From the NCBI RefSeq assembly GCF_000737315.1, contig NZ_JMCB01000033.1:1-62712 (forward strand): a DNA stretch of 62,712 nucleotides, read 5' to 3'. A model generated the notes under the pieces. It saw only the letters and a program-made list of their open reading frames with translations, searched no databases and was not told where the DNA came from. Below, piece after piece: positions 7,872 through 62,662 of the stretch. The stretch's first letter is position 1, and the number at the start of each line of letters is the position of its first letter. The position numbers were made by a program, and so were the translations under genes. The DNA is from Hyalangium minutum (GTDB lineage: Bacteria > Myxococcota > Myxococcia > Myxococcales > Myxococcaceae).

Positions 7872-7891
7872 GGCGGAGGCCTCGGAAGGGG

Positions 7892-9254: not shown

Positions 9255-9479
9255 TCAGCTCTTCTTGGTGGGGTCGGTGTACTCGGCGTCCGTGGTGCCG
9301 CGCCGCGCGCCCGGGGGCAGGGGCTTCGCGTCCACGAAGTCCTCACCCTTGGAGGCCTTCTTGAACGAGTAGACGAACTTGCCCACGGCGTTGCCCAGCT
9401 GGCCCATCCGCGAGGCGGAGAAGACCACCACCAGGATGAAGCCGATGACAATCATTTCGCCGAGGCCCAGCCCACACAT
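9255..9479 (-). CDS. tatA: TatA/TatE-family twin-arginine translocase subunit
   Basis: [42 protein letters not shown]: TM helix followed by an amphipathic helix. Confidence 0.75.
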
Positions 9480-9589
9480 GGGCGCCACAGTGCAGCAAAC
9501 CCCTCGGCGAGGCAAGCCACCTGTCTCCTGAGAAGGCCGGGCCGTACTTCTCCCGCCTTCTTGGGCCTGCTCTGGCGCAGACTGTCCCC

Positions 9590-47634: not shown

Positions 47635-48741
47635 GTGGCAAACCTGCACCAGCTCCTCAAGGCAATGGTCGAGAAGGGCGCTTCCGACCTGCACATCACC
47701 ACTGGCTCGCCGCCGCAGCTCCGCGTGGACGGTGAGCTGGTGCCGCTGAAGACGGCGCCCCTCACGCCGGTGGAGACCAAGCAGCTCTGCTACTCGATCC
47801 TCACGGACGCCCAGAAGCACAAGTTCGAAGAGGACAACGAGCTGGACTTGTCCTTCGGCGTGAAGGGCCTGTCCCGCTTCCGCGCCAACGTCTACATGCA
47901 GCGTGGCGCGGTGGCCGGCGCGTTCCGGACCATTCCGTTCAAGATCCTCACCTTCGCGGAGCTGGGTCTGCCGCCGGTGGTGGCCGAGCTGGTCAAGCGC
48001 CCCCGCGGCCTCATCCTCGTGACAGGCCCGACAGGCTCGGGCAAGTCCACGACGCTGGCGTCGATGATCGACAAGATCAACACCGACCGTCATGAGCACA
48101 TCATGACGATCGAGGACCCGATCGAGTACCTGCACCCGCACAAGAACTGCCTCGTCAATCAGCGCGAGGTGGGTGCGGACACGCGCAACTTCAAGACGGC
48201 GCTCAAGTACATCCTCCGCCAGGACCCGGACATCGTGCTGGTGGGCGAACTGCGAGACCTGGAGACCATCGAGGCGGCGCTCACCATCGCGGAGACGGGC
48301 CACACCTGCTACGCCACTCTGCACACCAACAGCGCGGTGCAGACCATCAACCGCGTGCTGGACGTGTTCCCGCCGTACCAGCAGCCCCAGGTGCGCGCGC
48401 AGATGTCGTTCGTGCTCGAGGGCGTGATGAGCCAGTCTCTGGTCGCCAAGGCGGGCGGCCCTGGCCGCGTGCTGGCGCTGGAGGTCATGATTCCCACGCC
48501 CGCTATCCGAAACCTCATCCGCGAGGACAAGGTCCACCAGGTCTACTCCTCGATGCAGGTCGGCCAGGCCAAGTACGGCATGCAGACCTTCAACCAGGCC
48601 CTGGCGGCGCTCCTGGCGCGGCGCCTGATCAGCCAGGAGGAGGCCTTCGGCCGGTCCAGTGATCCCGAGGAGTTGCGCAACATTCTGGCCGGTGCTGTAC
48701 CTGGGATGCAGCGGCCAGGCGGCGGAGCCCCCGGCCGTTAG
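47635..48741 (+). CDS. pilT: type IV pilus retraction ATPase
   Basis: ASDLH, GPTGSGKSTT, TIEDPIE, LRQDPD, AIRNLIRE, GMQT. Confidence 0.96.
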   Translation: MANLHQLLKAMVEKGASDLHITTGSPPQLRVDGELVPLKTAPLTPVETKQLCYSILTDAQKHKFEEDNELDLSFGVKGLSRFRANVYMQRGAVAGAFRTIPFKILTFAELGLPPVVAELVKRPRGLILVTGPTGSGKSTTLASMIDKINTDRHEHIMTIEDPIEYLHPHKNCLVNQREVGADTRNFKTALKYILRQDPDIVLVGELRDLETIEAALTIAETGHTCYATLHTNSAVQTINRVLDVFPPYQQPQVRAQMSFVLEGVMSQSLVAKAGGPGRVLALEVMIPTPAIRNLIREDKVHQVYSSMQVGQAKYGMQTFNQALAALLARRLISQEEAFGRSSDPEELRNILAGAVPGMQRPGGGAPGR

Positions 48742-48796
48742 TTATGGGTTTTAGAGACGCGCGGTAGACTGGTTGTCCCCGCGGAGGTCCAGAGTC

Positions 48797-50044
48797 ATGG
48801 CGGCACCTGCAATGCAGAAGACGGCATCATCGGCGAAGAAGGTCACACTGTGGCTCTGGGAGGCCAAGAGTAAGTCCGGCGAGGTCAAAAAGGGCGAGAT
48901 GGAGGCCGGAGACGCCGAGGCGGTCAACGCGCGCCTCAAGTCCTTGGGCCTCAACCCGGTCAAGGTCAAGAAGAAGCCCCTGGAGATCAACATCCCGGGG
49001 CTCGCTGGCGGTGTCACGGGCAAGGACATCCTCATCTTCACCCGTCAGTTCGCGACGATGATCGACGCCGGTCTGCCCCTGGTGCAGTGCTTGGACATTC
49101 TGGGCAGCCAGATGGACAACCCGGCCTTCCGCAAGGTCATCTTCCAGATCAAGGGCAAGGTCGAGCAGGGCTCCACCTTCGCCGACGCGCTCAAGGAGCA
49201 CCCGAAGGTCTTCGACGAGCTCTTCGTGCAGCTGTGCGCCGCGGGCGAGGTGGGCGGTATCCTCGACACCATTCTCAACCGTCTGGCGACCTACCGTGAA
49301 AAGGCCGAGAAGCTGAAGCGCAAGGTGAAGGGCGCGCTGACCTACCCGGTCATCGTTCTCGTGGTGGCCGTGGGCGTGACGGCGCTGCTGCTGCTCAAGG
49401 TGACGCCCGTGTTCGCGAAGATGTTCGGCGACTTCGGCCAGGCGCTGCCAGGACCCACTCAGTTCGTGGTGGACTTGTCCGAGTGGTTGCAGAAGTGGGT
49501 CATCCACCTGGTCGTCAGCATCGCCGCCTTCATTTTCGCCGCTGTCTCGTTCTACAGGAACCCCAAGGGCCGGAAGATCGCCGACAAGGTGATGCTGAAG
49601 ACGCCGCTGGTCGGTGACGTGCTCCGCAAGGTGGCGGTGGCGCGCTTCACCCGGACGCTGGGCACGATGATCTCCTCGGGCGTGCCCATCCTGGACGCGC
49701 TGGACGTGACAGCGAAGACGGCCGGTAACCGCACGGTGGAAGAGGCCATCTACTTCGTCCGCGGGAAGATCGCGGAAGGTAAGAACATCGCCGGCCCACT
49801 GGCGGACACCAACGTGTTCCCCTCCATGGTGGTGCAGATGATTGGCGTGGGCGAGGCCACGGGCGCCATGGACGCGATGCTTACCAAGATCGCCGATTTC
49901 TATGACGACGAGGTGGACGCGGCGGTGGGCAGCCTCACGGCCGCCATCGAGCCTCTGATGATGGTGTTCCTCGGCGTCGTGGTCGGTGGCTTCCTCATCT
50001 CGATGTATCTGCCGATCTTCTCGATCGCCGGTGCCGTCAAGTAG
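48797..50044 (+). CDS. pilC: type IV pilus platform protein
   Basis: FTRQFATMIDAGLPL, AGEVGGILD, ALTYP, MIGVGEATG, MYLPIF. Confidence 0.96.
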   Translation: MAAPAMQKTASSAKKVTLWLWEAKSKSGEVKKGEMEAGDAEAVNARLKSLGLNPVKVKKKPLEINIPGLAGGVTGKDILIFTRQFATMIDAGLPLVQCLDILGSQMDNPAFRKVIFQIKGKVEQGSTFADALKEHPKVFDELFVQLCAAGEVGGILDTILNRLATYREKAEKLKRKVKGALTYPVIVLVVAVGVTALLLLKVTPVFAKMFGDFGQALPGPTQFVVDLSEWLQKWVIHLVVSIAAFIFAAVSFYRNPKGRKIADKVMLKTPLVGDVLRKVAVARFTRTLGTMISSGVPILDALDVTAKTAGNRTVEEAIYFVRGKIAEGKNIAGPLADTNVFPSMVVQMIGVGEATGAMDAMLTKIADFYDDEVDAAVGSLTAAIEPLMMVFLGVVVGGFLISMYLPIFSIAGAVK

Positions 50045-50051
50045 CTCTCAG

Positions 50052-51683
50052 GTGCTCGCTCTTCACCCGGGCGAGGCCGAACTGCGGGTCCGGTTGACGT
50101 GGCTGTCGATCTTCCGGACCATCGCGACCAGCCTGTTGCTGGCGGTGTTCGCGCTGCGGCTGCTCGCGTCCTCCGGGACGCGAGACTTGTCGCGCGAGGA
50201 CTCGCTGGTCTTCCTGGGGATCGGCCTCGTCTACGTCCTCACGCTCATCTACGGCCTGTGGCTCCGCAAGGGGCGCGTGGGCCGCACCGCCGCCGTGGTG
50301 CAGGTGGCGGGAGACATCCTCATCGCCTCGGGCCTCGTGTCCGTGACGGGTGGGGGAGACTCTCCCGTCTCCTTCACCTACTCGCTGGCGGTCATCGCGG
50401 CGTCCATCCTCCTGTCGCAGCGCGGCGCCTTCGTGACGGCGGCGGCCTGCTCGGGGGCGTATGGGGCCATTGTCGGCCAGCACCTGCTGGAGCTGGGCAA
50501 CCACGCTCCCACGGCGATGGTGGTGCGCCTGGGCTTCACGTTCGCCAGCAATGTGCTGGCGTACTTCCTCATCGCCGCGCTGGCGGGCTACCTCAGCCGG
50601 CAGCTGCTGGCGACGGGCGGGCGGCTCTCGGCCAGCCAGGCGGACCTGAAGCGGCTGGCCACGCTCCACGAGCAGATTTTGGACAGCACGCCCTCCGGGC
50701 TCCTCACGTGCGAGGCGGATGGGAGCATCACCTTCATCAACCGCGCGGCGCTCAGCATCCTGGGCATGGAGGGTACGGCCGTGCAGTCCCGGCTGGTGCA
50801 GGAGTTGCTGCCCGGGCTGCCGGAGATGGAGCGGGTGCCTCGTTCCGAGCTGAAGGTGGACACGCCTCGGGGGCATCGCATCTTAGGGCTCACGCTGGCG
50901 CCGCTGGAGGGCACCGGCCGCGCCGCGCGCCTCATCGTCTTCCAGGACCTGACGGCGCTGCGGCGCGCCGAGGATGAGCTGCGGCGGGCGGACCGGCTCG
51001 CGGCGCTGGGGACCCTGGCGGCGCAGTTGGCGCACGAGATTCGCAACCCCCTGGCGGCCATGCGGGGCTCGGCGCAGATGCTGGCGCAGGATGGGGCGGG
51101 AGATCCGGGCTCGCAGCGGCTGACGAACATCCTGCTGCGCGAGTCGGATCGGCTGTCCCGGCTGGTGGAGGAGTTCCTGCGTTTTGCTCGCCCGCCCAAG
51201 CCGCAGCTGCGGCCGGTGGGGCTGGAGCTGCTGGTGCGGCAGCTGATGGAGATGTTGCAGGTGGATCCCCTGAGCCGCGGGGTGGAGCTGGATCTGGACC
51301 TGCAGCCGGTGGCGGCGGCGGTGGACCCGGATCAGGTCCGCCAGGTGCTGCTCAACCTGCTGCGCAACGCCTTCGAGGCGGTGGACTCGAAGGGGAAGGT
51401 GCGGCTGTCCCTGTCGGCCGAGGGGAACATGGCGCGGCTGAGCGTGTGGGACTCGGCCGGCTCCATCCCGGAGTCGAACCTGGGGCGAATCTTCGAGCCT
51501 TTTTTCACCACGCGAAGTGGAGGCACGGGGCTGGGGCTGGCTACGGCATACTCTATCGTGCGGGCGCACGAGGGACGGATGCAGGTGACCTCCTCGCCCG
51601 AGGCGGGGACGGAGTTCGTGGTGGAGCTGCCGCTGGCGGTAGCCTCCGAGGAGGTGCAGGGTGCACGTGCTAGTGGTGGATGA
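50052..51683 (+). CDS. pilS: two-component sensor histidine kinase
   Basis: TM sensor, PAS-like segment, LAHEIRNPL, LNLLRNA, FFTTRSGGTGLGL. Lies between pilC and pilR. Confidence 0.9.
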   Translation: MLALHPGEAELRVRLTWLSIFRTIATSLLLAVFALRLLASSGTRDLSREDSLVFLGIGLVYVLTLIYGLWLRKGRVGRTAAVVQVAGDILIASGLVSVTGGGDSPVSFTYSLAVIAASILLSQRGAFVTAAACSGAYGAIVGQHLLELGNHAPTAMVVRLGFTFASNVLAYFLIAALAGYLSRQLLATGGRLSASQADLKRLATLHEQILDSTPSGLLTCEADGSITFINRAALSILGMEGTAVQSRLVQELLPGLPEMERVPRSELKVDTPRGHRILGLTLAPLEGTGRAARLIVFQDLTALRRAEDELRRADRLAALGTLAAQLAHEIRNPLAAMRGSAQMLAQDGAGDPGSQRLTNILLRESDRLSRLVEEFLRFARPPKPQLRPVGLELLVRQLMEMLQVDPLSRGVELDLDLQPVAAAVDPDQVRQVLLNLLRNAFEAVDSKGKVRLSLSAEGNMARLSVWDSAGSIPESNLGRIFEPFFTTRSGGTGLGLATAYSIVRAHEGRMQVTSSPEAGTEFVVELPLAVASEEVQGARASGG

Positions 51684-53055
51684 CGAGCTGTCGATGCGCG
51701 AGTACCTCGAGATGCTGCTGTCTCGAGGGGGCTACCGCGTGAGTGTCGCTGGGAGCGAGAAGGCCGCTGTCGATGCGTTGAGCGCGGGCGGGGTGGACGT
51801 CGTCATCTCGGACATGAAGCTGGGCGGGGGCAGCGGGTTGAACGTGCTGAAGGCGGCGCGCTCCCAGTCGGCGCCGCCCGAGGTCATCCTCATCACCGCG
51901 TTTGGGACGCCAGCCGCGGCCGTGGAAGCGATGCGGGCGGGGGCGTACGATTACATCTGCAAGCCCTTCGACAACGAAGAGCTGAAGCTGCTGGTGCAGA
52001 AGGCGCTGGAGAAGCGCGGGCTGCGCGAGGAGAACCGGCACCTGCGCCGTTCGCTGAGCGGCATGCGCGGGCTGTGGGTGGGCGAGAGCCCGGCGATGCA
52101 GGAGGTCTGGGGGCTGGTGGAGAAGGTGGCGCCCAGCCGCACCACGGTGCTCATTACCGGCGAGAGCGGCACGGGCAAGGAACTGGTGGCCCGCGCGCTC
52201 CACCTGCGGAGCACCCGGGCGGGGGCGCCGTTCCTGCCGGTGAACTGCGCGGCGATCAACGAGGGCGTGCTGGAGAGCGAGCTGTTTGGCCACATAAAGG
52301 GTGCGTTCACGGGAGCGCAGACGGATCGCTCGGGCATCCTGGTGTCTGCGGGAGAGGGGACGGTATTCCTGGACGAAATCGGCGAGGTGCCGATGTCCAC
52401 GCAGGTGAAGCTGCTGCGCGTGCTCCAGGAGCGGCGGGTGAAGCCGGTGGGCAGCTCCACGGAGGTGCCGTTCAACGCGCGCGTGGTGGCGGCCACCAAC
52501 AAGCGGCTGGAGGTGGAGGTGAAGGCGGGCCGCTTCCGCGAGGACTTGCTCTACCGGCTCAACGTCATCACGGTGGATCTGCCGCCGCTGCGCGACCGCA
52601 CGGGGGACATTCCGCTGCTGGCGCGCCACTTCCTGATGCAGATGCGCGAGGAACTGGGCAAGCCGAACCTGGACTTCTCCCGGGAGGCGATCGAGGTGCT
52701 CGAGCGCTACTCGTTCCCGGGCAACGTGCGGCAGCTGCAGAACATCGTGGAGCGCGCGGCGACGCTGGCGGATGTGGACGTGCTGGGGCCGGACACGCTG
52801 CCCTCCGCGCTGCGCGGTGAGCGGGAGTCGGAGCAGCAGGCAGCGGGTACGGTGGAACTGCCGACAGGTTTCTCGCTGGAGCGGTACCTCGACGATGCCG
52901 AGCGGCGGTATCTGCTGGCGGCGCTGCAGCGAGCCGGAGGCGTGAAGACGCGCGCGGCGGATCTGCTGGGGCTGAGCTTCCGCTCCTTCCGGTACCGGGC
53001 GGCCAAGCACGGCCTGGGGGACCGCGAGGACGGCGGCGACACCGGGCAGGCGTAG
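51661..53055 (+). CDS. pilR: sigma54-dependent response regulator
   Basis: REC domain, GESGTGKE, ESELFGHIKGAFTGA, FLDEIGE, FREDLLYRLNV, FPGNVRQL, C-terminal HTH. Confidence 0.93.
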   Translation: MHVLVVDDELSMREYLEMLLSRGGYRVSVAGSEKAAVDALSAGGVDVVISDMKLGGGSGLNVLKAARSQSAPPEVILITAFGTPAAAVEAMRAGAYDYICKPFDNEELKLLVQKALEKRGLREENRHLRRSLSGMRGLWVGESPAMQEVWGLVEKVAPSRTTVLITGESGTGKELVARALHLRSTRAGAPFLPVNCAAINEGVLESELFGHIKGAFTGAQTDRSGILVSAGEGTVFLDEIGEVPMSTQVKLLRVLQERRVKPVGSSTEVPFNARVVAATNKRLEVEVKAGRFREDLLYRLNVITVDLPPLRDRTGDIPLLARHFLMQMREELGKPNLDFSREAIEVLERYSFPGNVRQLQNIVERAATLADVDVLGPDTLPSALRGERESEQQAAGTVELPTGFSLERYLDDAERRYLLAALQRAGGVKTRAADLLGLSFRSFRYRAAKHGLGDREDGGDTGQA

Positions 53056-53067
53056 GGACGGTATCGC

Positions 53068-54816
53068 CTACGGGGCGAGCACCTTGCGCAGCCAGGCCTC
53101 CAGGGTGATGAGGAGCCAGATCTTCACCCCATGGCGCGGGCGCAGGCCGCCCAGCTTGCCGGAGAGCAGCCGCTCCAGCCACGCGCGGTCGAACAGCTCC
53201 CACCGTGGGAGCCCGTCCAGCAGCCGTTGGCGTGCCTGCGGCAGCAGCGGGCCCTGGAACCAGCCCTCGACGGGCACGAGCATGCCGCTCTTGGGCCGCT
53301 CGATGATGTCGCGCGGCAGGAGGTCCTCCACGGCGCGCTTGAGCAGGTACTTCTCCACCGAACCCTTGAGCTTGATCTGCGGTGGCGCGCGAAAGGCCAC
53401 CTCCGCCACGCGCTCGTCGAACAACGGTGCCCGAGGGAGCATGCCGAACGGGGCGCTGACCTCGTCCACCTTGTGCAGAATGTGGTGGGCGCCCTTGAGG
53501 ATCAGGTTGAGCGCCATCAGCTTGCCTACGAAGGTCTTCCAGCGGGGATCGGTGAAGAGGGGGACCAGCGAGGCCTCGATGGGCTGGGCCGCGAGCGCCT
53601 CCTTCATCTTCCGCGAGAGCGCCAGGTCGAAGTCATCGAAGCACTTGAGGTGGGCTCGCAGGTAGCTCCGCTCTCGCGCGAGCGACGCGTCTTCGGCTCC
53701 CGCGACGTCTCCGTACAACTCCGCCAGCAGCATCGGCAGGTTCTTCGGCCCTCCGAAGCAGGGATCGCCGCCCTCGCCGTTGAGCACCACGCCCACCTCC
53801 GCGCTCGCCTCGCGGAAGAGCAGTGCGTTGGGCACGGTCAACGGGTCTCCAATGGGATCCGAGTGCAGCGCGATCGTCTCGTCCAGGTGGTGGACGATGA
53901 CCTGAGGAGACAGCTCCACGATGCGGTGGGTGGTGCGGCAATGGTCGGCAACGAGGGTGCTGAATGGCAGCTCGTTTCGGTACTCGGGGCCGAACGAGAC
54001 CGACCAGGTGATGACCTCCTGGTCATGCAGCCGCTTCGCCAGCGCGACCACGAGACTGGAGTCCAGCCCTCCCGAGAGGAATGCGCCCACCTTCTCGCCC
54101 GAGGGCAGCCTGCGATGGACGGCTCCCTCCAACTCCACCCGCAGCTGCTGGCGCAGGGCCTCCTCGCTTTCCGGAGGAAGGGGAGCGCTCGCGTCCACCT
54201 CTTCCGGCACGGACCAGAATGACTCGCGGCGGGGAGCGCCTCCTCCAAGCGGCAGGTGCACTACCTCGCCCGGCAAGACCTCCAGGACGCCTTCCACGAG
54301 GGTCTCTTCGCCGGGGAGATACGCATAGCTGAGGTACGTCGCGACGCCGCGCAGATGGAGCCGACGTGGGACGAGGCCACTGGCCAGCAGCGCATGGATC
54401 GTCGAGGCGAAGATCCATCCCTGGGGCACCTTCGAGTAGTAGAGCGTCCGCTCGCCGATGGCGTCCCGCGAGAGCCGGAGCTCGCCGTCGGACACCCACG
54501 CGAGCGCAAACGCCCCGTTCACCTCGGACAGGCGGCCTGCCGCCACGAGAGCCCTCCACTGAGAGAGTTCCTCGAGGCGCTTGCCGTCCAGCCAGCACGC
54601 GTCCCAGTCCGCGACGAGCGCTGAGCCCTGCGCCGGGGAGAGCACCTGGGCTCCAGGCCCCAGGGAGCGCACCATGGCCTCCGAGGCGCTTCGGGCTTGC
54701 TCGGGAGACACGGCGGTGGAGACGAGGCCACCCACGCGCCCGGTAGGGCGGCGGCGGGTCACTCCCGTTCCGAACGGTGGTCCCGGCTTGGGCTTGAGCA
54801 ACAGCGGTTCTGGCAT
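53068..54816 (-). CDS. asparagine-synthetase-like ATP-dependent amide ligase, copy 2 (glutaminase domain degenerate)
   Basis: RDAIGERTLYY, FASTIHAL, AFLSGGLDSS, LNGEGGD, RAPLFD, KYLLK, RPKSGM. No N-terminal Cys and no NGEIYN. Confidence 0.85.
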   Translation of the reverse strand: MPEPLLLKPKPGPPFGTGVTRRRPTGRVGGLVSTAVSPEQARSASEAMVRSLGPGAQVLSPAQGSALVADWDACWLDGKRLEELSQWRALVAAGRLSEVNGAFALAWVSDGELRLSRDAIGERTLYYSKVPQGWIFASTIHALLASGLVPRRLHLRGVATYLSYAYLPGEETLVEGVLEVLPGEVVHLPLGGGAPRRESFWSVPEEVDASAPLPPESEEALRQQLRVELEGAVHRRLPSGEKVGAFLSGGLDSSLVVALAKRLHDQEVITWSVSFGPEYRNELPFSTLVADHCRTTHRIVELSPQVIVHHLDETIALHSDPIGDPLTVPNALLFREASAEVGVVLNGEGGDPCFGGPKNLPMLLAELYGDVAGAEDASLARERSYLRAHLKCFDDFDLALSRKMKEALAAQPIEASLVPLFTDPRWKTFVGKLMALNLILKGAHHILHKVDEVSAPFGMLPRAPLFDERVAEVAFRAPPQIKLKGSVEKYLLKRAVEDLLPRDIIERPKSGMLVPVEGWFQGPLLPQARQRLLDGLPRWELFDRAWLERLLSGKLGGLRPRHGVKIWLLITLEAWLRKVLAP

Positions 54817-54818
54817 GA

Positions 54819-56075
54819 CTACCCGAAGCTATCCGCGCCACCGTCCGAGACGTCGGCATCCGAGGAGAAGGAGTCGGTATCCACCTCCCAGGTGGAATCT
54901 CCGCCTCCGCCTCCGCCATCCCCGCCACCGCTGCTGCTCTGGTCAGCGGCCTGCTTCTTCTGCCGTGCCAACTCCTGGCCGTCTTGTCGGCCCGCCATGG
55001 CGGCTGCGGGCAATAGCACGGCGGCTCCCGCGGCGACTCCCGCGGCGCTCCCGGCAACACGGCCCGTCGCGCCGCGGCCTCCAAGCAAGGGCGTGGCAGC
55101 CCGGGCAGCCTGCTGGCTCTGGCTCATGGCGCGGAACAGCCGCTTCACGATCTGCTCGGGACGGATGACCGCCAGCTCCAGCCTGTGCTGGGACAGCCAC
55201 TTGGCTTCATCGGGAGAGATGCCACCGCCCGAAGGGACCTCCTGTGCACTCTTCTCGAACAGCTTGTGGAACGGCGAGGCGTGAACAGGCCTCAGCCCCA
55301 CGTCGACGATCCGGATCCCCAGGCCCTTGAACCACGCGGGATCGTTCGCGAGCCGGTGGGCCATTCGGCACCCCTCGGGGGTGATGTCATGGAGCGTGTA
55401 CACCTCGAGCCGCGGGTTGCGCCGGAGCATTCGCCGCACGGTCTCGAAGGCCTGCTGCGGGTAGCCACCCATCGACAGCACCGCGCAGTTGTTCTCGAAG
55501 TGGAAGTTGTTGGCCAACAGCAGGTCCACCGTGCGCGCGCGATCACAGATGACGGCCCGATCGAACGAATAGTCACCGATGTCCGGATCCGGCGCCCGGG
55601 CGGGCTTGTCGTCCTGGGGCTTGCGCGCAATCACGCCCTTGGGCTTGCCGTGGACCGAACCCCAGAGATCCCACATCCGCTCGAAGTCGCCCCGGGGGAG
55701 CACCTTCGTCCCCATATTCGCGGCAATCATGTACAGCAGCAGGAGGAGGGCTGGGATGTAGACGATGAGGACGGCGGGCGCCGCCCGGCCCACCACGAAG
55801 CCCATGAAGAAGCCGATGAACAAGAGCATCACGAGGAGCGCCACCTTGGCGTTCGCGATCCTCGGCTTGCGGCAGAGCTCGTAATAGAGGTGCTCCACCC
55901 CCCACTTCACCTGGCCCCCCGCCGACACCTTGTCGATGGCCTTCTGGAAGGCCATGTCAGTGAAGGGATCATTCTCGCGAGGCTCGAAGGCGAACCGGCC
56001 TCCGCAGTTGGGACACGTATGGGTGTCCTTGCGCTCGGGGTACTTCGAGTCGTGCTGGCAGCGGATGCAGATCAC
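54819..56075 (-). CDS. hypothetical membrane protein: CxxC...CxxC Zn ribbon, two TM helices, TOPRIM-like domain, acidic Gly/Ser/Asp tail
   Basis: CIRC...CPNC, two hydrophobic helices, AVICD...GGYP...LHDITPEG, tail SSSGGGDGGGGGGDSTWEVDTDSFSSDADVSDGGADSFG. GTG start after GGAGGT. Confidence 0.7.
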   Translation of the reverse strand: MICIRCQHDSKYPERKDTHTCPNCGGRFAFEPRENDPFTDMAFQKAIDKVSAGGQVKWGVEHLYYELCRKPRIANAKVALLVMLLFIGFFMGFVVGRAAPAVLIVYIPALLLLLYMIAANMGTKVLPRGDFERMWDLWGSVHGKPKGVIARKPQDDKPARAPDPDIGDYSFDRAVICDRARTVDLLLANNFHFENNCAVLSMGGYPQQAFETVRRMLRRNPRLEVYTLHDITPEGCRMAHRLANDPAWFKGLGIRIVDVGLRPVHASPFHKLFEKSAQEVPSGGGISPDEAKWLSQHRLELAVIRPEQIVKRLFRAMSQSQQAARAATPLLGGRGATGRVAGSAAGVAAGAAVLLPAAAMAGRQDGQELARQKKQAADQSSSGGGDGGGGGGDSTWEVDTDSFSSDADVSDGGADSFG

Positions 56076-57826
56076 GCCGCACCTCCCGGCCGGCGGCCCC
56101 GGCCATCCACGAACACCCTCATCCACGCCTCCAGCATCGCGAGCGCCCACAGCTTCTCGCCGATGCGCCGACGCCGCGTCTCATCCGCTTGGTCCTGTCC
56201 CTTGCGCAGCCGCGCGATGTAGTCCTCGCGGAACATGCCGCGCTTGCGCACCGCCGTGGCTCCGAGCAGCTCCTCCATGAGTGGCGCGAGCGGCCCGAGC
56301 ACCCAGTCCGTGGCGGGCACGCTCATGCCGAACTTCCGCCGCCAGACGATGTCGTCCGGGAGCTTGTCCTGCAGCGCCAGCTTGAGGACGTACTTCTCGC
56401 AGGCCCCGTGGAGCTTGAGCCGAGGGGGCAGGGCGAACGAGGCCATGGCCAGCTCGCGGTCGAACAGCGGCACCCGCATGTCGAGCGCCCAGGCGTTGGC
56501 GATCCGCTCGGCGCGCGGGAGGATGTTCTGCGAGCCCTTGAGCGCGATGTCCGCCAGGCGCACTCGGTTCAGGAAGTGGGGAATCTCCGGGCTGCCCAGG
56601 TAGGGCCGCAGCAGTGCGCGCCGCTGGCCGGGCCCGCCGATCTGGGCACGGAACTCGGGGGTGTAGAGCGCGTCCTCCAGCCCGTAGAAGCGGTGGTACG
56701 AACGCAGGTAGATCTCCTCGGGCTCCTCGGGTGAGTCCTCGTACAGGCCACCGTAGACCTCGGCGGCCACCATGGGCTTCGAGGTCCACCCGCCGAAGAG
56801 CTGGTCGCCGCCCTCGCCATTGAAGACAGCCGAGAAGCCGGCCTGCCGCGCCGCCCGGCCCAGCAAGAACTGCGGCCCCGTCACTGCATCGCCGAACGGC
56901 AGGTCCAGCTTCCAGACGAGATCCATCAGCGCCGCGCCTACGTCCTCGCCCGAGGACTTCACCCAGGTGAGCGGCAGCTCCAGCATCTTGGCAACCTGCT
57001 CTGCTTGCTCGCGCTCCACGCTGCGCTCGCCGAAGTCGAGGCTGAAGGCCTGGACCTTGACGCCTGCCTCCTTGAGCCAGACCGCCACGCCCGAGGAGTC
57101 GATGCCGCCCGAGAGATAGAGGGCCACCTCGGGCTCACCGTTGAGCCGCTTCTGCACGGCCTTCTTGCAGAGCGCCCGCACCCGCCGTACCGCGGTGGCC
57201 TGATCCTCGAGCGCGGGATCGATCTGCTCGCGCAGGGTGAAGTAGGGCGTGACGGAGAGCTGGCCACCCTCGAAGACGCCGACGTGGCCGGGCAGCAGGC
57301 GCTTCACGCCGCGCAAGGGCACATCCGCGCCGGGAACGAAGGAGAAGGTGAGGTACTTGTGGAGCGCGGAGGGCTCCAGCACGGCCTCGAAGCCCGGGAT
57401 GGCGAGGAGCTGCTTCAGCTCGCTCGCGAAGTAGAGCACGCCGCCTTGCACTGCGTAGTAGAGCGAGCGGACGCCAAAAGGGTCGCGTGCCAGCGTCAGC
57501 CGCCGACGCTCTCCGTCCCACCACGCGCAGGCGAAGGCTCCATCCAGGTCATCGAGCGCGGAGCCGCCGCCGGAGAGCCGCTTCAGGAGGGTCTCGGCGG
57601 GCGAATCCGAGGGTGGGGTCAGCGTCCCAGCGCAAGCGACGAGGTGGGCCCCCTGTCGGAGGATCGAGGCGGACTTCCCTGGGCGGCCGCCCCACCACCG
57701 GTAGCCGAGTCCCACGCCGGGCGCGTGCGCGGTATCGGTCCGGTCGCCGCGGTAGTCGATCGCCCCGAGCATCGCCGTGAGGAGCTCGGGGGAGGCATCG
57801 CCGACATAGCCACAGATTCCGCTCAT
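56072..57826 (-). CDS. asparagine-synthetase-like ATP-dependent amide ligase, copy 1 (Cys1 replaced by Ser)
   Basis: MSGICG, RDPFGVRSLYY, FASELKQL, LYLSGGIDSS, FNGEGGDQLFGG, RVPLFD, KYVLK, RRKFGM. Confidence 0.85.
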   Translation of the reverse strand: MSGICGYVGDASPELLTAMLGAIDYRGDRTDTAHAPGVGLGYRWWGGRPGKSASILRQGAHLVACAGTLTPPSDSPAETLLKRLSGGGSALDDLDGAFACAWWDGERRRLTLARDPFGVRSLYYAVQGGVLYFASELKQLLAIPGFEAVLEPSALHKYLTFSFVPGADVPLRGVKRLLPGHVGVFEGGQLSVTPYFTLREQIDPALEDQATAVRRVRALCKKAVQKRLNGEPEVALYLSGGIDSSGVAVWLKEAGVKVQAFSLDFGERSVEREQAEQVAKMLELPLTWVKSSGEDVGAALMDLVWKLDLPFGDAVTGPQFLLGRAARQAGFSAVFNGEGGDQLFGGWTSKPMVAAEVYGGLYEDSPEEPEEIYLRSYHRFYGLEDALYTPEFRAQIGGPGQRRALLRPYLGSPEIPHFLNRVRLADIALKGSQNILPRAERIANAWALDMRVPLFDRELAMASFALPPRLKLHGACEKYVLKLALQDKLPDDIVWRRKFGMSVPATDWVLGPLAPLMEELLGATAVRKRGMFREDYIARLRKGQDQADETRRRRIGEKLWALAMLEAWMRVFVDGRGRRPGGAA

Positions 57827-57867
57827 GCGTCCCCCTCGGTAGGGCCTGTTGCGGGGGACGGACAGTA

Positions 57868-59124
57868 TCACCCAGGGCGCTTCTTGTGCGTCCGGGCATG
57901 CCGTCCAGGTGCCTTCCCCGGCTCGTGCTGCGGCACTCCGTGGTCCTTCTGCTGCGGGCCAGGGTCGCGCTGAGAGGACATCAGCCGCTCCCACTCGGCT
58001 TGGAAGACGGGGTCCTCCCGAGGCACGGGGACCCGAGGGATCTTCGCGCGCATGATGTGCTCGATGCGCGCGAGCACCGGGTCATCCTTGTGGGTGGCGA
58101 ACGTGGAGGCGATGCCACTCGCCGAGGCCCGGGCCGTACGTCCGATGCGGTGCACGTAGTCCTCGGGAGCGTGGGGCAGGTCGTAGTTGATGACGTGCCC
58201 TACGTCCTCCACGTCCAGTCCCCGGGCGGCAATGTCGGTGGCCACGAGGCAGCGGTAGGTCCCCTTCCGGAACCCTTCCATCGCCTGCTTGCGCTGGTTC
58301 TGGGTGCGGTCCGCATGCAGCACCGCGCTCCGGTACCCCGCCCGCTGCAGGTGCGTGAGCACCTTGTCCGCGCGCTCCTTGGTCCGGGTGAAGACGAGCG
58401 CCGTGGCCTCGTCGCGCGCGAGCAGCGCGAGCAGCAGGGGCGTCTTCTCCTCGGGCTTGACGCGGTACAGGCGCTGCTCGGCGCGCTCGGCGGGGGTGCC
58501 GCTGCGAGTCACCTCCACGCGGACGGGCGAGCGCAGTTGCTCCCGGGCGAAGCGCGTCACATCCGGGCCCAGCGTGGCGGAGAACAGGAGCGTCTGCCGG
58601 CGCGAGGGGAGTGCAGCGAGGATGCGCTCGATTTGCGGCAGGAAGCCCATGTCGAGCATCCGGTCCGCTTCATCGAGCACCAGGCCCTCCAGCTTCGGGA
58701 ACGCGGCGACTCCAGCCTCGAGGAGGTCCACCAGCCGCCCCGGCGTGGCCAGGACGAACGAGGGCCGCTGTTTCAGCGCCTCCACCTGGGCGGCCATGTC
58801 CTCGCCGCCAATCACCACGGCGTGCGTGAGGCCCCGAGGCTCGGCGAAGAAGCGCACGGGCTCGGCAATCTGCAGCACCAGCTCGCGAGTAGGGGCCAGC
58901 ACCAACCCCAAGATGCCCTTGCGCCCGGCGAAGCGCTCCACGAGGGGCAGCACATAGGCAGCCGTCTTCCCGGTGCCGGTCGCGGCGCAGCCGATGACGT
59001 CCTTGCCGGCCAGGGCGGGCGGAATGGCCCGGCTCTGGATGGGCGTGGGCTGCGCGAAGCGCGCTCGGCGCAAGGCGTCCAAGGCCTCTGGTGAGAGGCC
59101 CAACTGGACAAAGGCGTCACTCAC
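57868..59124 (-). CDS. DEAD-box RNA helicase (RhlE-like)
   Basis: PTPIQ, ATGTGKT, PTRELV, TPGRL, DEADRMLDMGF, SAT, ATDIAARGLD, HRIGRTAR. Confidence 0.95.
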   Translation of the reverse strand: MSDAFVQLGLSPEALDALRRARFAQPTPIQSRAIPPALAGKDVIGCAATGTGKTAAYVLPLVERFAGRKGILGLVLAPTRELVLQIAEPVRFFAEPRGLTHAVVIGGEDMAAQVEALKQRPSFVLATPGRLVDLLEAGVAAFPKLEGLVLDEADRMLDMGFLPQIERILAALPSRRQTLLFSATLGPDVTRFAREQLRSPVRVEVTRSGTPAERAEQRLYRVKPEEKTPLLLALLARDEATALVFTRTKERADKVLTHLQRAGYRSAVLHADRTQNQRKQAMEGFRKGTYRCLVATDIAARGLDVEDVGHVINYDLPHAPEDYVHRIGRTARASASGIASTFATHKDDPVLARIEHIMRAKIPRVPVPREDPVFQAEWERLMSSQRDPGPQQKDHGVPQHEPGKAPGRHARTHKKRPG

Positions 59125-59145
59125 AAGGCCGCCAATCCCGTCCGC

Positions 59146-59916
59146 CTACTTGAAGTCACGGCGCGAGAAGATGAAGGCCGCCAGGGTGATCAGCACCGCC
59201 GAGTACCCTACGGCGTAGAGCATGGACGGCAGCAGCTCCGATACCGGGGTGGGAATCTCGTAGGTGGCCTGCACGCGGTAGTTGAGCCGCGAGAGGTTGG
59301 GCAGCACGTAGTACACCGCCTTGCCCAGCCACCGCAGGAAGGGCTCCTCCGCCTTCTTCGACATCTCGTAGATGTCCCCGCTCAGGTGTCCGGCGAAGTA
59401 CGCGCCAATCGTCACCGTGGCCGACACCATCTGGCTGGAGAAGCTCGACATCACGAAGCCGATGCTGCTGAGGATGAGCAGCTCGAAGAAGAGCATGACG
59501 ATGGCCACGAACTGGGCCTCGGTGAAGAGCGTGCCGTAGAGGGCGATCTGGATGAAGAACAGCACCGCCATGGCCGCCAGCATCACCCCCAGCGTCAGCA
59601 TGTTCCCCGCGAAGCGCGCGATGAGGAACTGCGCCCGCGAGATGGGCTTGGAGACGATGAGGAACAGCGTACGCCGCTCGATCTCCCGGCTCAGCATGCC
59701 GCTGGACAGGAACACGGCCAGCAGCACCAGCACGATGCTCATGATGCCGATGCCCACGTCCGTGAGCACGCGATCGAAGGTGGAGATGCTCAGGTTGGTC
59801 AGCAGCGACGAGGCCACCAGCAGGCCGAACGCGAACGCGCCGACCACGACTGTGACGCGGTTGCGCCGCGCCTCTCGGAAGCCATTGAACGTGAGCGCGA
59901 GGAACGGCCGAATCAT
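59146..59916 (-). CDS. pilI: ABC transporter permease, PilI-like
   Basis: FREARRNR, SREIERRTLFLIVSKPISRAQFLIARF, YYVLPNL, FSRRDFK. Coupled to the ATPase gene. Confidence 0.8.
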   Translation of the reverse strand: MIRPFLALTFNGFREARRNRVTVVVGAFAFGLLVASSLLTNLSISTFDRVLTDVGIGIMSIVLVLLAVFLSSGMLSREIERRTLFLIVSKPISRAQFLIARFAGNMLTLGVMLAAMAVLFFIQIALYGTLFTEAQFVAIVMLFFELLILSSIGFVMSSFSSQMVSATVTIGAYFAGHLSGDIYEMSKKAEEPFLRWLGKAVYYVLPNLSRLNYRVQATYEIPTPVSELLPSMLYAVGYSAVLITLAAFIFSRRDFK

Positions 59917-60884
59917 GATGCGATCTCTCCTCCGACGGTCCCGTGACGGGCTTCGCTCATGGCCTGGAGGAACAGATCCTCTAGCGAGAAGCGGGTCGGC
60001 TGAATCTTGGTGACGCGGCCACCCGCCGCCAGCACGCTCTGGAGGAGCGGCTGCACGTGGGCGTCCTTGGCGCGAAGCAGCAGGCGGTTGTGCAGGTCCT
60101 GCATCTGCTCGATGGGATGGCCGAGGCCGCGCACCGCGTCCGCCGCCATGCCCTCCACGGTGAGCTCCACCTCGGGCACCTGCGTGGTGAGCAGCTCCTG
60201 CACGCTGCCCTCGCGGGCCAGCCGGCCGTTGACGAGCACCGCGACCCGGGTGCACAGCGCCTCGACGTCCGGAATGATGTGCGTGCAGAAGAGCACCGTG
60301 GTGCCGCGCTCGCGCTCCTGGAGGATGAGGTCGCGGATCTCCCGCCGGCCCACCGGGTCCAGGCCGCTCGTCGGCTCGTCCAGGATGAGCAGCTTGGGCC
60401 GCCCGACAATCGCCTGCGCCAGGCCGATGCGCTGCACCATGCCCTTGGAGTAGCGCCGGATCTGCAGGCCGGCCGTGCGCGACATGCCCACCGAGCCCAG
60501 GACCTCCTTCACCCGCGCGTCCAGCTCCTTGCCGCTCAGCCCGACGAGCTGCCCGGCCAGCCGGACGAACTCCTCGCCCGTGAGGTACTCATACGGAGCG
60601 GGGTTCTCCGGCAGGAAGCCCACGTTGCGGCGGGCCTCCTTGGAGTTCGGTGGGTGCCCGAAGAGGGTTGCCGTGCCGCTCGTCGCCTGGACGAGGTTCA
60701 TCAGAATCTTGATGGTGGTGGACTTCCCAGCCCCGTTGGGGCCGAGCAGCCCGTAGACCTGTCCAGGTTCAATGGAGAGGTTGAGGTTCTGGAGAGCCAG
60801 CACCCGCTTGTTCATCCAGAACCCCAGTCGATACGTCTTCGACAGGTCCCGTGTCTCGATGGCCAGCGTCGTGGGAGCGCTCAT
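59913..60884 (-). CDS. pilH: ABC transporter ATPase, PilH-like
   Basis: GPNGAGKST, YSKGMVQR, LDEPTSGLDP. Lies between pilG-like and pilI-like genes. Confidence 0.85.
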   Translation of the reverse strand: MSAPTTLAIETRDLSKTYRLGFWMNKRVLALQNLNLSIEPGQVYGLLGPNGAGKSTTIKILMNLVQATSGTATLFGHPPNSKEARRNVGFLPENPAPYEYLTGEEFVRLAGQLVGLSGKELDARVKEVLGSVGMSRTAGLQIRRYSKGMVQRIGLAQAIVGRPKLLILDEPTSGLDPVGRREIRDLILQERERGTTVLFCTHIIPDVEALCTRVAVLVNGRLAREGSVQELLTTQVPEVELTVEGMAADAVRGLGHPIEQMQDLHNRLLLRAKDAHVQPLLQSVLAAGGRVTKIQPTRFSLEDLFLQAMSEARHGTVGGEIAS

Positions 60885-61813
60885 GGGGAGTTCGGTGCGT
60901 TGGAGTGGCCCTGCTGTTCCTTCTGCTTTTCCGACTGCTCCATCTTCTTGCGGTAGTCGATGGGCTCCAGGCGCAGGGTGCTGGAATTGGAGGCGCTGCG
61001 CCCGTCCTCGCCGATGTAGATGACGCCGCCCATGGGGTCGGTCGGGATGGCGCTCAGGTAGCCCTTCGTCACCAGCTCGGAGAGCGGCGAGGGCAGCCGC
61101 CCCTCCTTCTGCTTGAAGGCGACGATGGCGTCGTCGATCTGCACGAGCACTTGCTCGCGCTGGATCTCCTTCACGCGCTCCTCGAAGAGCTGGCGCAGCT
61201 CTGGATCTGTCTCGTTGTCCCGGAAGGACTCGGCCAGGGCCAGCGCGGCATCGAAGCGGCGGTTGAACGCCAGCATGCGCGAGGCGATCTCGGGCACGAA
61301 CTTGTCCACGGTGGGCAGCGTGGCGGCGATGCGCAGGTGCTCCGCGGCGGCCGCGTGCTCACCGAAGAAGTAGCTCAGGTTGTAGGCCAGGTAGAGGCGC
61401 AGCGAGGAATCCTGGGGGAAGTTCTTCACGCCCTTCTCGAGGATCTTCCGCGCCTCCTTCGTGTTCACCCAGTTCTCACGGCCGAGGTTCGTGGGGATGG
61501 TGTTGCCCGCGAACAGGTAGACCTTGTGGAACTTGGGATCCAGGTCCGTCACCAGGTCCGCGTAATAGAACAGGTCCAGGTAGCGGGTGGCCTCCAGGCT
61601 GCTCCCGCCGCGCCCAGCGGCTTGGATGGCCTGGAGCCAGTAGTAGTCCGCGACGAGCGATTGCTGGCCAGCGCCAATGACGCGCAGCAGCTCGATTCGA
61701 GGAAGCAGCGGGGCTTGATAGGGGCCGCGAGGCGGGTCGCGCGGCGGTTCCGAGAGGGCTGCCACCGTCCCGAGACCCGCCAGCAGAATCGCCACTGTGA
61801 CGAGGGGCTTCAT
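60881..61813 (-). CDS. pilG: PilG-like accessory protein (TPR-like helices)
   Basis: VADYYWLQAIQ, VTDLDPKF, DPMGG. Position between pilin and pilH matches the myxobacterial pilA-G-H-I order. Confidence 0.7.
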   Translation of the reverse strand: MKPLVTVAILLAGLGTVAALSEPPRDPPRGPYQAPLLPRIELLRVIGAGQQSLVADYYWLQAIQAAGRGGSSLEATRYLDLFYYADLVTDLDPKFHKVYLFAGNTIPTNLGRENWVNTKEARKILEKGVKNFPQDSSLRLYLAYNLSYFFGEHAAAAEHLRIAATLPTVDKFVPEIASRMLAFNRRFDAALALAESFRDNETDPELRQLFEERVKEIQREQVLVQIDDAIVAFKQKEGRLPSPLSELVTKGYLSAIPTDPMGGVIYIGEDGRSASNSSTLRLEPIDYRKKMEQSEKQKEQQGHSNAPNSP

Positions 61814-61842
61814 TGCTTGGAGGTCCGTACCCTACTGGCAGC

Positions 61843-61858
61843 GCCCATGGCGTGCCAA
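61843..61858 (-). promoter_or_regulatory. candidate sigma54 promoter for pilGHI
   Basis: Minus strand TTGGCACG-CCAT-GGGC: exact -24 element and a correctly spaced GC, but the -12 element lacks TT. Confidence 0.35.
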
Positions 61859-61897
61859 TGAACATCCAACACGGCAAGGCAGCAGGGCCTTCCCTGC

Positions 61898-62542
61898 CTA
61901 GTCGCAGTTCACGTCGTTGTAGACGTTGAACGGCTCACCTGCGGCGATGTGAACCGCAGCGCCGCCTGTGCTGGGGCAGACAGGCTCGACCGCTCCATCG
62001 GAAGAGGCGATGAGCCAGGAGTCCGCTTTGTCCGTCCCCATCGTGTTGTCCACATCCCCAGCGGCGTAGGCGATGAAGTGCCAGACCTGATTATTGCCGG
62101 TGGAGTAGACGCCGGGCGTCACCGTCATTCCCGCGGCGTTGGCATCGGGGCCCCAGTCCGCTGTCGCGGCGAGCGTCGGGGTGAAGAGCGGCACCAGCGA
62201 TGGGTATCGGAACGTGTCCGCCTCGACGCAGTCATCCTGCGGATTGCGCACGGAGTTCTGGGCCGAGCGGGACTCGGCGCTCGCGCAGGAGGCGGCCATG
62301 TGGTAGCTGTAGCGGTTGCCCCGCTCGGGAGCAAAGCCTGGCACGCGGATCTGCATGGGCATCTGCGTCAGCGTCTTCATCCCATTGTACAGGGACTTGA
62401 GGTTCGCAGAGACCTCGGCCTGCCGTGCACGCGCCTGGAAACGAACGAAGTTGGGAATGGCGATGGCTGCCAGGATGCCGATGATCGCCACCACGATCAT
62501 CAATTCAATCAGGGTGAAACCACGCCTTTTCTGACTGGGCAT
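61898..62542 (-). CDS. pilA: type IVa major-pilin-like protein (PilA paralogue)
   Basis: RG|FTLIELMIVVAIIGILAAIAIPNF, GFAPERGNRY, four Cys, C-terminal AGEPFNVYNDVNCD. Confidence 0.9.
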   Translation of the reverse strand: MPSQKRRGFTLIELMIVVAIIGILAAIAIPNFVRFQARARQAEVSANLKSLYNGMKTLTQMPMQIRVPGFAPERGNRYSYHMAASCASAESRSAQNSVRNPQDDCVEADTFRYPSLVPLFTPTLAATADWGPDANAAGMTVTPGVYSTGNNQVWHFIAYAAGDVDNTMGTDKADSWLIASSDGAVEPVCPSTGGAAVHIAAGEPFNVYNDVNCD

Positions 62543-62662
62543 GCGAGGGCCTCCCCACAAACAAAACAGACCGGGATGTACAAGGTCCCGGCCTGTCTTA
62601 CATCAGATATGTCGAACTGAAAATCAGTCGCAGTTCACGTCGTTGTAGACGTTGAACGGCTC
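61900..62662. repeat. 37-bp identical direct repeat at the 3' ends of the two pilins
   Basis: AGTCGCAGTTCACGTCGTTGTAGACGTTGAACGGCTC at 61900-61936 and 62626-62662. Confidence 0.9.
62559..62596 (-). terminator. intrinsic terminator between tandem pilin genes
   Basis: Minus strand ACAGGCCGGGA-ccttgtaca-TCCCGGTCTGT-TTTGTTT: 11-bp stem with one G-U pair that forms only on the minus strand, followed by a U-tract. Confidence 0.75.

Follow-up and report, generated by a model that had tools for sequence, protein, structure and literature searches.

A conserved module of two AsnB-fold ligases flanking a membrane protein with an invariant C-terminal tip, in Hyalangium minutum and other bacteria

In the 62,712-nt (62.7 kb) stretch of Hyalangium minutum DNA analysed here (contig NZ_JMCB01000033.1, referred to as the window), three genes on the minus strand form a compact cluster, which we designate A, X, and B. 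A and B each code for a ligase with the AsnB fold, and X, situated between them, codes for a membrane protein with a disordered acidic tail (Table 1). Gene A starts with an ATG codon preceded by GAGGGGGA, and its TGA stop codon shares bases with the GTG that starts X (GTGA). The start of X is preceded by GGGAGG. The gene ends with a TAG stop codon, which is separated from the ATG of B by 2 nt (tc). An initial annotation made from the DNA sequence had described this arrangement as tightly translationally coupled, and both the coordinates and the coupling are borne out by the sequence. The list of open reading frames also contains a longer reading frame for X starting at position 56150. Because all 120 X homologues compared begin with M[IK]C[IV].C, the GTG at position 56075 is the true start.

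Table 1. Positions of the A-X-B genes, of their motifs and domains, and of adjoining features in the window
Feature	Position	Strand	Remarks
Gene A, AsnB-fold ligase, 584 aa, N-terminus MSGICG	57826-56072	-	Pfam Asn_synthase, E 5e-62; degenerate glutaminase, intact PP-loop synthetase domain
PP-loop SGGIDSS of A, residues 239-245	57092-57112	-	Read from the sequence; conserved in an alignment of 70 sequences
Gene X, membrane protein, 418 aa, GTG start	56075-54819	-	Zinc ribbon, two transmembrane helices, TOPRIM-like domain, disordered acidic tail
Zinc ribbon of X, residues 1-30 (C3, C6, C21, C24)	55986-56075	-	C21 and C24 invariant among 57 sequences, C3 and C6 in ≥90% of them
Two transmembrane helices of X, residues ~75-120	55716-55853	-	Helices 75-98 and 100-120 in the AlphaFold model; hydrophobic, sequence variable
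Topo VI-A/Spo11-type TOPRIM-like domain of X, residues ~165-325	55101-55583	-	Foldseek, sub-threshold PF21180, many invariant polar residues
Disordered Gly/Ala/Asp/Ser-rich tail of X, residues 327-418	54822-55097	-	pLDDT (predicted local distance difference test) <50 over residues 332-364, 382-392, and 408-418
C-terminal tip D-S-F-G-COOH of X	54822-54833	-	Invariance among 241 homologues
Gene B, AsnB-fold ligase, 582 aa, without N-terminal Cys	54816-53068	-	Pfam Asn_synthase, E 1.4e-66; intact PP-loop synthetase domain
PP-loop SGGLDSS of B, residues 248-254	54055-54075	-	S248, G249, G250, D252, S253, and S254 invariant in 37 sequences
Deletion scar	57837-57871	-	~35 bp versus ~1.27 kb in the closest relative L006 (6974-8239) with a decarboxylase gene
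DEAD-box RNA helicase	59124-57868	-	Adjoins gene A upstream

We scanned 185,579 species by pattern, with a single representative genome per species, and 392 of them encode a relative of X. The best 80 loci span at least eight phyla and stem from Myxococcota, Acidobacteriota, Planctomycetota, Beta- and Gammaproteobacteria, Cyanobacteria, Armatimonadota, Rokubacteria, Vulcanimicrobiota/Eremiobacterota, and Leptospirae. The order A-X-B was found in every locus of the main clade with enough flanking sequence, the genes usually overlapping or abutting. Many loci, including the window and most of those in Betaproteobacteria, consist of A-X-B alone. A-X-B is a real conserved three-gene module of many bacterial phyla. 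The initial annotation had regarded the triplet as an undescribed operon with possible counterparts in other phyla; the latter are now at hand, and no description of X or of the triplet was found in the searched literature or among the Pfam, NCBIfam, and PADLOC models.

A different layout was found in a clade from Cyanobacteria and Blastocatellia. Here the order is a small membrane protein, A, a decarboxylase, and X (often in two copies), while B lies farther off and on the opposite strand. Both ligase paralogues remain associated with X in this rearranged form. X is tandemly duplicated in this clade (L069-L083, Cyanobacteria and some Blastocatellia), and each copy keeps the xSFG end. Among the loci are also three from lake-metagenome assemblies titled 'Akkermansia muciniphila' or 'Bordetella parapertussis' (L012, L019, and L022), names which look like mislabelled bins.

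A and B are paralogues with the AsnB fold. They are 33% identical over about 500 residues (E 7e-61), and each combines a match to PF00733 with an SGGxDS PP-loop and the synthetase domain. No solved structure is as close to either of them as they are to one another; the best match is TsnB9 (7YLZ) with 97 bits for A and 62 bits for B. Orthologues of A are 55-92% identical across phyla. The AlphaFold (AF2) model of B has a mean pLDDT of 89.4 and contains the whole two-domain AsnB fold with a folded N-terminal domain; the best Foldseek matches of this model were TsnB9, beta-lactam synthetase, the human and E. coli asparagine synthetases (ASNS and AsnB), and the carbapenam synthetase CarA. Both ligases had been reported to keep the ATP-pyrophosphatase motifs, and these are indeed seen in the sequence and in the alignments: in addition to the PP-loops both proteins contain NGEGGD, with the PP-loops and GEGGD being invariant. 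The homologues of B share a further motif, PGPPxG....RRRPxGR[IV]GG, within the first ~30 residues (window 54730-54816), which has no counterpart in asparagine synthetases. Two long homologues of B, P0384 and P0386, were considered as domain fusions and rejected, as they contain low-complexity insertions and C-terminal extensions only.

The glutaminase machinery of both ligases had been described as lost. This was confirmed in so far as the nucleophile is displaced or missing. It has to be corrected in that A does hold a cysteine, at position 5 (MSGICG) and not at position 2. B has neither an N-terminal cysteine nor a candidate nucleophile cysteine. Several orthologues of A have Ala or Trp instead of Cys5, and the distant clades (GYWG) lack the cysteine. 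In both ligases only the C-terminal half of the Pfam model GATase_7 was matched, in A the model positions 51-123. When A was aligned by hand to what we take to be the E. coli AsnB sequence, the NGE oxyanion motif read AGT. A functional N-terminal nucleophile glutaminase in A after removal of a MSGI propeptide was considered and rejected because the cysteine is replaced in several orthologues and, in this hand alignment, the oxyanion motif is gone. Judged from the sequence, the glutaminase is functional in neither A nor B.

The synthetase domain deviates from characterised enzymes as well. E. coli AsnB, PesC, TsrC, ScdTA, and AsnO possess a Glu-Tyr pair which has been tied to carboxylate activation (E363/Y368 in PesC; PMC13060819). 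Our alignment maps the pair of PesC to E352/Y357 of E. coli AsnB. According to motif spacing, the pair of these asparagine synthetase (AS)-like enzymes would be replaced by Q/W in A (GEGGDQLFGGW) and by P/P in B (GEGGDPCFGGP). Neither ligase reaches the cut-off of any NCBIfam model. The asparagine synthase model TIGR01536, the best NCBIfam match of A, gave 240.1 bits for A and 208.3 bits for B (cut-off 267.1). The corresponding values are 131.4 and 99.1 bits for the lasso cyclase NF033535 (cut-off 525), 198.7 and 206.5 bits for the amidotransferase of N-acetylglutaminylglutamine amide (NAGGN) synthesis, TIGR03104 (cut-off 570), and 215.5 and 211.2 bits for the XrtA/PEP-CTERM amidotransferase TIGR03108 (cut-off 816.9). 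Public automated annotation names both proteins 'asparagine synthase (glutamine-hydrolysing)'; that they are simple asparagine synthetases is unlikely.

The protein X has no Pfam or NCBIfam family at standard thresholds and is annotated publicly as 'hypothetical' or as 'RNA polymerase subunit RPC12'. A word-index search gave 1069 homologues, and at 50% identity there are 1369 representatives. Aligning 57 sequences that come from several phyla gave a mean column identity of 48%, which is unusually high. A CxxC...CxxC zinc ribbon is followed by a conserved helical segment, two variable hydrophobic helices, and a near-invariant block, DYSFDRAVICDRARTVDLLLANNFHFENNCAVLS..GYP...LHD..P.GC. The zinc ribbon and the two transmembrane helices, both noticed initially, are supported by the conserved cysteines of the alignment and by the helices of the AF2 model. 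The long X homologues P0124 and P0194 (687 and 845 aa) are tandem X-X fusions and not fusions to a ligase.

X had also been called TOPRIM-like, and as a remote relationship this holds. The AF2 model (mean pLDDT 81.6) contains an alpha/beta domain at residues ~165-325, and the top Foldseek matches of the model were Topo VI-A structures (9o0g_A and 1d3y), with a probability of 1.0 but an E-value of 5e-3 and a template-modelling score of ~0.25-0.3, followed by RecR and a small TOPRIM protein. PF21180 was matched below threshold by the window X (16 bits, cut-off 24.1) and by 43 of the 57 aligned members (best E 9.8e-5). The fold appears remotely similar to the TOPRIM fold of Topo VI-A/Spo11, and by hand alignment X would have the motifs GYP and D-x-x-P-x-G in common with Top6A. 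The metal-binding residues are altered: at the positions matched by hand to the Top6A motifs, an invariant Asp178 stands in place of the Glu, and His229-Asp230-x-Thr/Ser in place of DxD. X furthermore differs from Topo VI-A in being membrane-anchored, in lacking the 5Y-CAP domain and the catalytic Tyr, and in that, except in this one lineage, none of its neighbours is related to DNA.

Of the non-enzymatic features of the module, the extreme C-terminus of X is conserved best. In the window the tail ends with ...SDGGADSFG, and the initial description of a tail rich in Asp, Ser, and Gly with the end DGGADSFG agrees with the sequence. We compared the tails of 241 complete X homologues. Past the last helix they vary in length from 28 to 236 aa (median 50) and consist to a large part of G (20%), A (15%), D (14%), and S (14%). 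In spite of this variation the last residue is Gly and the last but one is Phe in 100% of the sequences. Position -3 is Ser in 68%, Ala in 14%, and Gly in 11% (together 93%), and position -4 is Asp in 93% and Glu in 3% (together 96%). The terminal DSFG, whose conservation the initial annotation had considered informative, is thus essentially invariant. The recurrence of this arrangement across phyla places the tip far beyond chance.

No other element of the tail is universal. The DSFS and SDGG further upstream in the window X are not conserved in the cyanobacterial/Blastocatellia clade, nor are the upstream Asp residues conserved in distant clades generally. The (D/E)-x-F-G end is kept in the former clade, although the rest of X is only 28-37% identical, and both tandem paralogues carry it (...AVDSFG and ...TAESFG). 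The initial focus on the many Asp residues of the tail as targets of amidation, cyclisation, or cross-linking would, judging from these comparisons, have to shift to the last four residues, namely the D/E at position -4 and the F-G-COOH. Only 15 of the 241 sequences have a Lys within the last 25 residues, which makes an internal lactam within the tip improbable. The position of the motif exactly at the C-terminus argues that the free alpha-carboxylate matters. Intramolecular autoinhibition by the tail was also considered and found no computational support, the tip not being docked on X's own domains by AF2.

The tail also occurs on a gene of its own. A sister subfamily of X (X'; P0235, P0246, and relatives) ends in a Pro-rich segment, which follows a conserved DPRGFFQT motif, instead of in the FG tail. 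In locus L086 the order is AsnB, X', a gene for a protein of 203 aa (9458-10069), and AsnB, and the 203-aa protein ends with ...SSSGGWDSGGDSFG. An extra open reading frame was likewise found in L087 between X' and ligase B (ending at 2527; protein end ...GDFGDDSFG) and in L091 after X' (5008-5640; protein end ...SWGGSDSFG), the contig of the latter stopping before any B. These separate tail proteins of ~200 aa carry a Gly/Leu-rich hydrophobic segment of their own. The three loci are independent; a metagenome scan for more yielded two loci, one of them informative, and the contigs of P0231 and P0213 are too short to show the neighbours. The retention of a separate DSFG-ending gene in the ligase cluster indicates that the tail is a module in its own right which stays with the ligases. 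Among the comparative arguments, this split variant is the strongest one for the ligases needing the tip.

How could two ligases without glutaminase and an invariant protein terminus belong together? AsnB-fold synthetase domains adenylate a carboxylate, which is then attacked by an amine. Members that have no glutaminase, such as the lasso cyclases, beta-lactam synthetase, and CarA, make use of an amine of the substrate. X, the conserved partner that is not one of the enzymes, offers just two invariant carboxylates, the alpha-carboxylate of its terminal Gly and that in the side chain of residue -4. That two ligases match two invariant carboxylates is suggestive, though not evidence. The enzymes TsrC, ScdTA, PesC, and AsnO have been found to adenylate the C-terminal alpha-carboxylate of peptides (PMC13060819). 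Our best explanation, a tentative proposal to which we give a little less than even confidence, is that at the tip of the tail each of the two ligases performs one ATP-dependent step of amide formation.

According to this proposal, X would be an inner-membrane protein with both ends in the cytoplasm, as suggested by the two transmembrane helices and by ligases without signal peptides, and would present a flexible acidic tail ending with (D/E)-x-F-G-COOH. A and B can no longer take ammonia from glutamine and have kept the adenylating ATP-pyrophosphatase site. Each ligase would adenylate one of the invariant carboxylates of the tip (the Gly alpha-carboxylate and/or the Asp/Glu side chain at -4), and the activated carboxylate would then be coupled to an amine not derived from glutamine; free ammonia, an amino acid, a diamine, and an amine on a protein are candidates. 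A LysA-like decarboxylase, where there is one, might make this amine or might decarboxylate an amino acid after its attachment; other lineages have a cupin in its stead. The tail could be either the substrate of a modification regulating X or a protein-tethered carrier arm. A more far-reaching version is unlikely in our estimation, namely that the module is a new kind of AsnB-fold system for protein C-terminal activation in which the x-F-Gly-COOH end of a membrane-tethered acidic arm, or in the split variant of a separately encoded one, undergoes adenylation and is linked to an amino acid or amine, the attached group is processed by the decarboxylase or cupin while tethered, and the second ligase extends, closes, or transfers it, so that X would serve as a membrane-anchored arm building or delivering a metabolite or would be conjugated to another molecule.

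The decarboxylase and the cupin were found among the neighbours of the module, which were counted in 82 non-redundant loci (L001-L085), some of which end early and which are phylogenetically related. A pyridoxal phosphate (PLP)-dependent LysA-like decarboxylase is present in 37 loci, directly upstream of A in the main clade and between A and X in the cyanobacterial/Blastocatellia clade. It is 55-90% identical across clades, scores 259 bits with TIGR01048 (cut-off 298) and 127 bits with TIGR03099 (cut-off 478), and has among its NCBIfam relatives FslC, which decarboxylates an already ligated ornithine in rhizoferrin synthesis. A cupin_2 protein of ~220 aa occurs in 23 loci at variable positions. 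No locus contains both, where about 10 would be expected if the two were independent, and this avoidance suggests that they are alternative accessory enzymes. A single-pass membrane protein of ~150 aa was found in 27 loci, mostly upstream of A and in some cases on the opposite strand (e.g. L001 5784-6251). It has a conserved ...WPTHCRQ.F... motif and belongs to no Pfam, NCBIfam, or PADLOC family. Finally, a K+ channel (Ion_trans_2 with TrkA_N/RCK) is encoded in 12 loci from several phyla at variable positions (e.g. L001 3390-4532 and L033 5028-6260), which hints at a link of the module to ion or osmotic homeostasis.

None of these four accessory genes gave a tblastn match in the whole 62.7-kb window. 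The closest relative, a Hyalangium metagenome-assembled genome (L006) with ~83% DNA identity and the same synteny from pilA to the DEAD-box helicase, has the decarboxylase between the helicase and A (open reading frame 7066-8253, ~1.19 kb). In a blastn comparison the window positions 62675-57872 correspond to L006 2187-6973 and the positions 57836-53002 to L006 8240-13082. By this alignment the decarboxylase gene has been cleanly deleted in the window. The short leader 'GATACTGTCC' upstream is kept.

Several points weigh against modification of the tip by the two ligases. The absence of the decarboxylase from the window means that this enzyme is not essential to the A-X-B core. The last 11 residues of X are left undocked and with low confidence by AF2. 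With the Glu-Tyr pair replaced, the chemistry of A and B may differ from that of the known members. The TOPRIM-like domain is more conserved than a passive carrier would need, which argues for an activity of X itself that the model does not explain. In the cyanobacterial loci L083 and L085 the decarboxylase and X are present with no AsnB paralogue within the available flanks; the ligases may be situated elsewhere in those genomes. Finally, a short invariant acidic and aromatic tip on a variable low-complexity linker is also the design of a pure docking motif.

Such a docking role is the alternative that we took most seriously, even though we regard it as rather unlikely. The unmodified (D/E)xFG-COOH would recruit A and/or B to the membrane or fold back on X, the ligases would turn what the decarboxylase or cupin produces into a small-molecule amide (for example an osmolyte or a conjugate of a polyamine or an amino acid), and the TOPRIM-like domain would act as a sensor or regulator. 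An acidic C-terminal tip on a flexible linker is used as docking motif by SSB. The very high conservation of the globular part of X would fit this role, as would the metabolic nature of the accessory genes, the ligand-gated RCK K+ channel, and the weak similarity that A and B show to TIGR03104, the amidotransferase for the osmolyte NAGGN. Docking gives, however, no obvious need for two paralogous ligases or for an invariant terminal Gly, and the core includes neither a conserved transporter nor a second conserved enzyme that would form a substrate, many loci having A-X-B only. Nor does it fit well that the separate tail protein stays in the ligase cluster in L086, L087, and L091, next to B where B is on the contig. 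In a different scenario the tail or the separate tail protein would be the precursor of a product resembling the peptides that are made by ribosomes and modified after translation (RiPPs), its C-terminal segment being modified by A and B, cleaved, and exported. AS-like enzymes are common in RiPP clusters, with about 300 uncharacterised (PMC13060819), and the motif lies at the C-terminus as a core peptide does. This origin is nevertheless very improbable: RiPP cores tend to be hypervariable, yet this 'core' does not change from phylum to phylum, a highly conserved membrane protein of 350-450 aa would have to act as the precursor, scores with the NCBIfam models for lasso cyclases and macrolactams fall far short of the cut-offs, and the 82 loci have no conserved protease, RiPP recognition element (RRE), leader-recognition domain, or exporter.

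A stress or defence module had been put forward initially as an alternative, with X conceivable as a TOPRIM nuclease effector under control of the ligases. TOPRIM domains are frequent in defence nucleases, and the TOPRIM resemblance, the membrane anchor, and the patchy phyletic distribution could be read in this way. The idea found no support. PADLOC-DB 2.0 gave no defence assignment: only a generic QueC PP-loop match was obtained for A (29.6 bits) and none for X, B, the small membrane protein, or the cupin. The DxD of the TOPRIM domain is not intact, the neighbours are metabolic or ion-transport genes and not defence islands, and X is more than 50% and A 55-70% identical between phyla, unlike fast-evolving defence genes. 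We consider an anti-phage role highly improbable. Least credible of all is ordinary ammonia-dependent asparagine synthesis by A and B, with X adjacent by accident. Automated annotation and the best NCBIfam match of A, TIGR01536, speak for it; the synteny with X is obligate across phyla, though, both proteins stay below the TIGR01536 cut-off, the Glu-Tyr pair is lost, and no solved asparagine synthetase is as near to A or B as the two are to one another.

The cluster is embedded in the myxobacterial type IV pilus locus. On the plus strand pilT, pilC, pilS, and pilR occupy the positions 47635-53055, the last of these being the end of pilR. The minus strand runs towards them with pilA, a pilG-like gene, two genes for ABC transporters, and the DEAD-box RNA helicase (57868-62560), and then A-X-B. 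There are two copies of pilA in L006 versus one in the window. The stop codons of pilR and B are convergent and 12 bp apart, with no terminator-like site in between. A scan of the region 52800-59400 found no promoter-like site and a single terminator-like site, which is situated inside X on the wrong strand and is within chance expectation. A link of the module to the pil genes or the helicase was rejected, since this synteny recurs only in the closest relative, L006, and not in other Archangiaceae or other phyla.

Comparison with known systems would place the module with the AS-like enzymes acting on genetically encoded C-termini. A and B share with TsrC, ScdTA, PesC, and AsnO the AsnB fold and carboxylate adenylation by the PP-loop domain, and the substrate of those enzymes is a genetically encoded C-terminus beside acidic residues, as we presume for the tail of X. 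For the nitrile synthetase PesC an adjacent Asp is important (PMC13060819). These four enzymes keep a working glutaminase, the use of glutamine, and the Glu-Tyr pair, and they act singly on short peptides; A and B, in contrast, are two glutaminase-dead paralogues with Q/W and P/P in place of the pair and a presumed substrate that is the tail of a large membrane protein. The lasso cyclases, beta-lactam synthetase, and carbapenam synthetase have, like A and B, lost the N-terminal nucleophile and kept adenylation, with an amine of the substrate as nucleophile. The tip of X differs from the substrates of lasso-type systems in having no N-terminal amine and next to no Lys, and the system differs in its paired ligases and in having neither RRE nor leader protease. 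The initial statement that this is not a standard lasso cluster is upheld by the NF033535 scores and by flanks made up of pil genes and the DEAD-box helicase; no protease or RRE is annotated in the related loci that were looked up, and none recurs among the conserved neighbour clusters.

Two further systems offer partial parallels. LysW is a soluble zinc-ribbon protein of ~54 aa ending with EDWGE, whose terminal carboxylate is ligated by an ATP-grasp enzyme (LysX/ArgX) to the amino group of a metabolite, which is then processed while tethered. X is a zinc-ribbon protein with an acidic C-terminal tail, too. The resemblance is functional only: X has 418 aa, is membrane-bound and TOPRIM-like, has a DSFG tip and a zinc ribbon ~400 residues away from the tail, and its ligases have the AsnB fold. 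The XrtA/PEP-CTERM amidotransferase TIGR03108 and the PLP decarboxylase TIGR03099 likewise combine an AsnB-family enzyme with a LysA-like decarboxylase, in a chemically uncharacterised system. These models are among the best NCBIfam matches of A, B, and the decarboxylase, all far below the cut-offs. Neither exosortase or PEP-CTERM genes nor an Ngg-synthetase-like neighbour, as in the NAGGN system, were found in the related loci or conserved neighbour clusters examined.

The labelling of A and B as asparagine synthases and of X as hypothetical or RPC12 has led to a module present in at least 392 species, with ~1,400 clusters at 50% identity, being overlooked. If the tip served for docking only, it would be a new, widely conserved protein-recruitment motif, and X would be a TOPRIM-fold membrane protein tied to amide-forming metabolism, possibly to K+ or amine homeostasis. 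If the tip is the substrate, a mass shift is predicted on the peptide ending with ...ADSFG, and the lineages with and without the decarboxylase, with a cupin instead, or with the tail on a separate gene provide natural controls. The ubiquitin-like proteins, LysW, and Pup are activated by E1-like, ATP-grasp, and glutamine-synthetase-like enzymes. With the tip as substrate, A and B would be the first AsnB-type ligases acting on a full-length conserved cellular protein and not on a small molecule or RiPP precursor, and the enzyme folds known to activate a protein C-terminus would increase to four.

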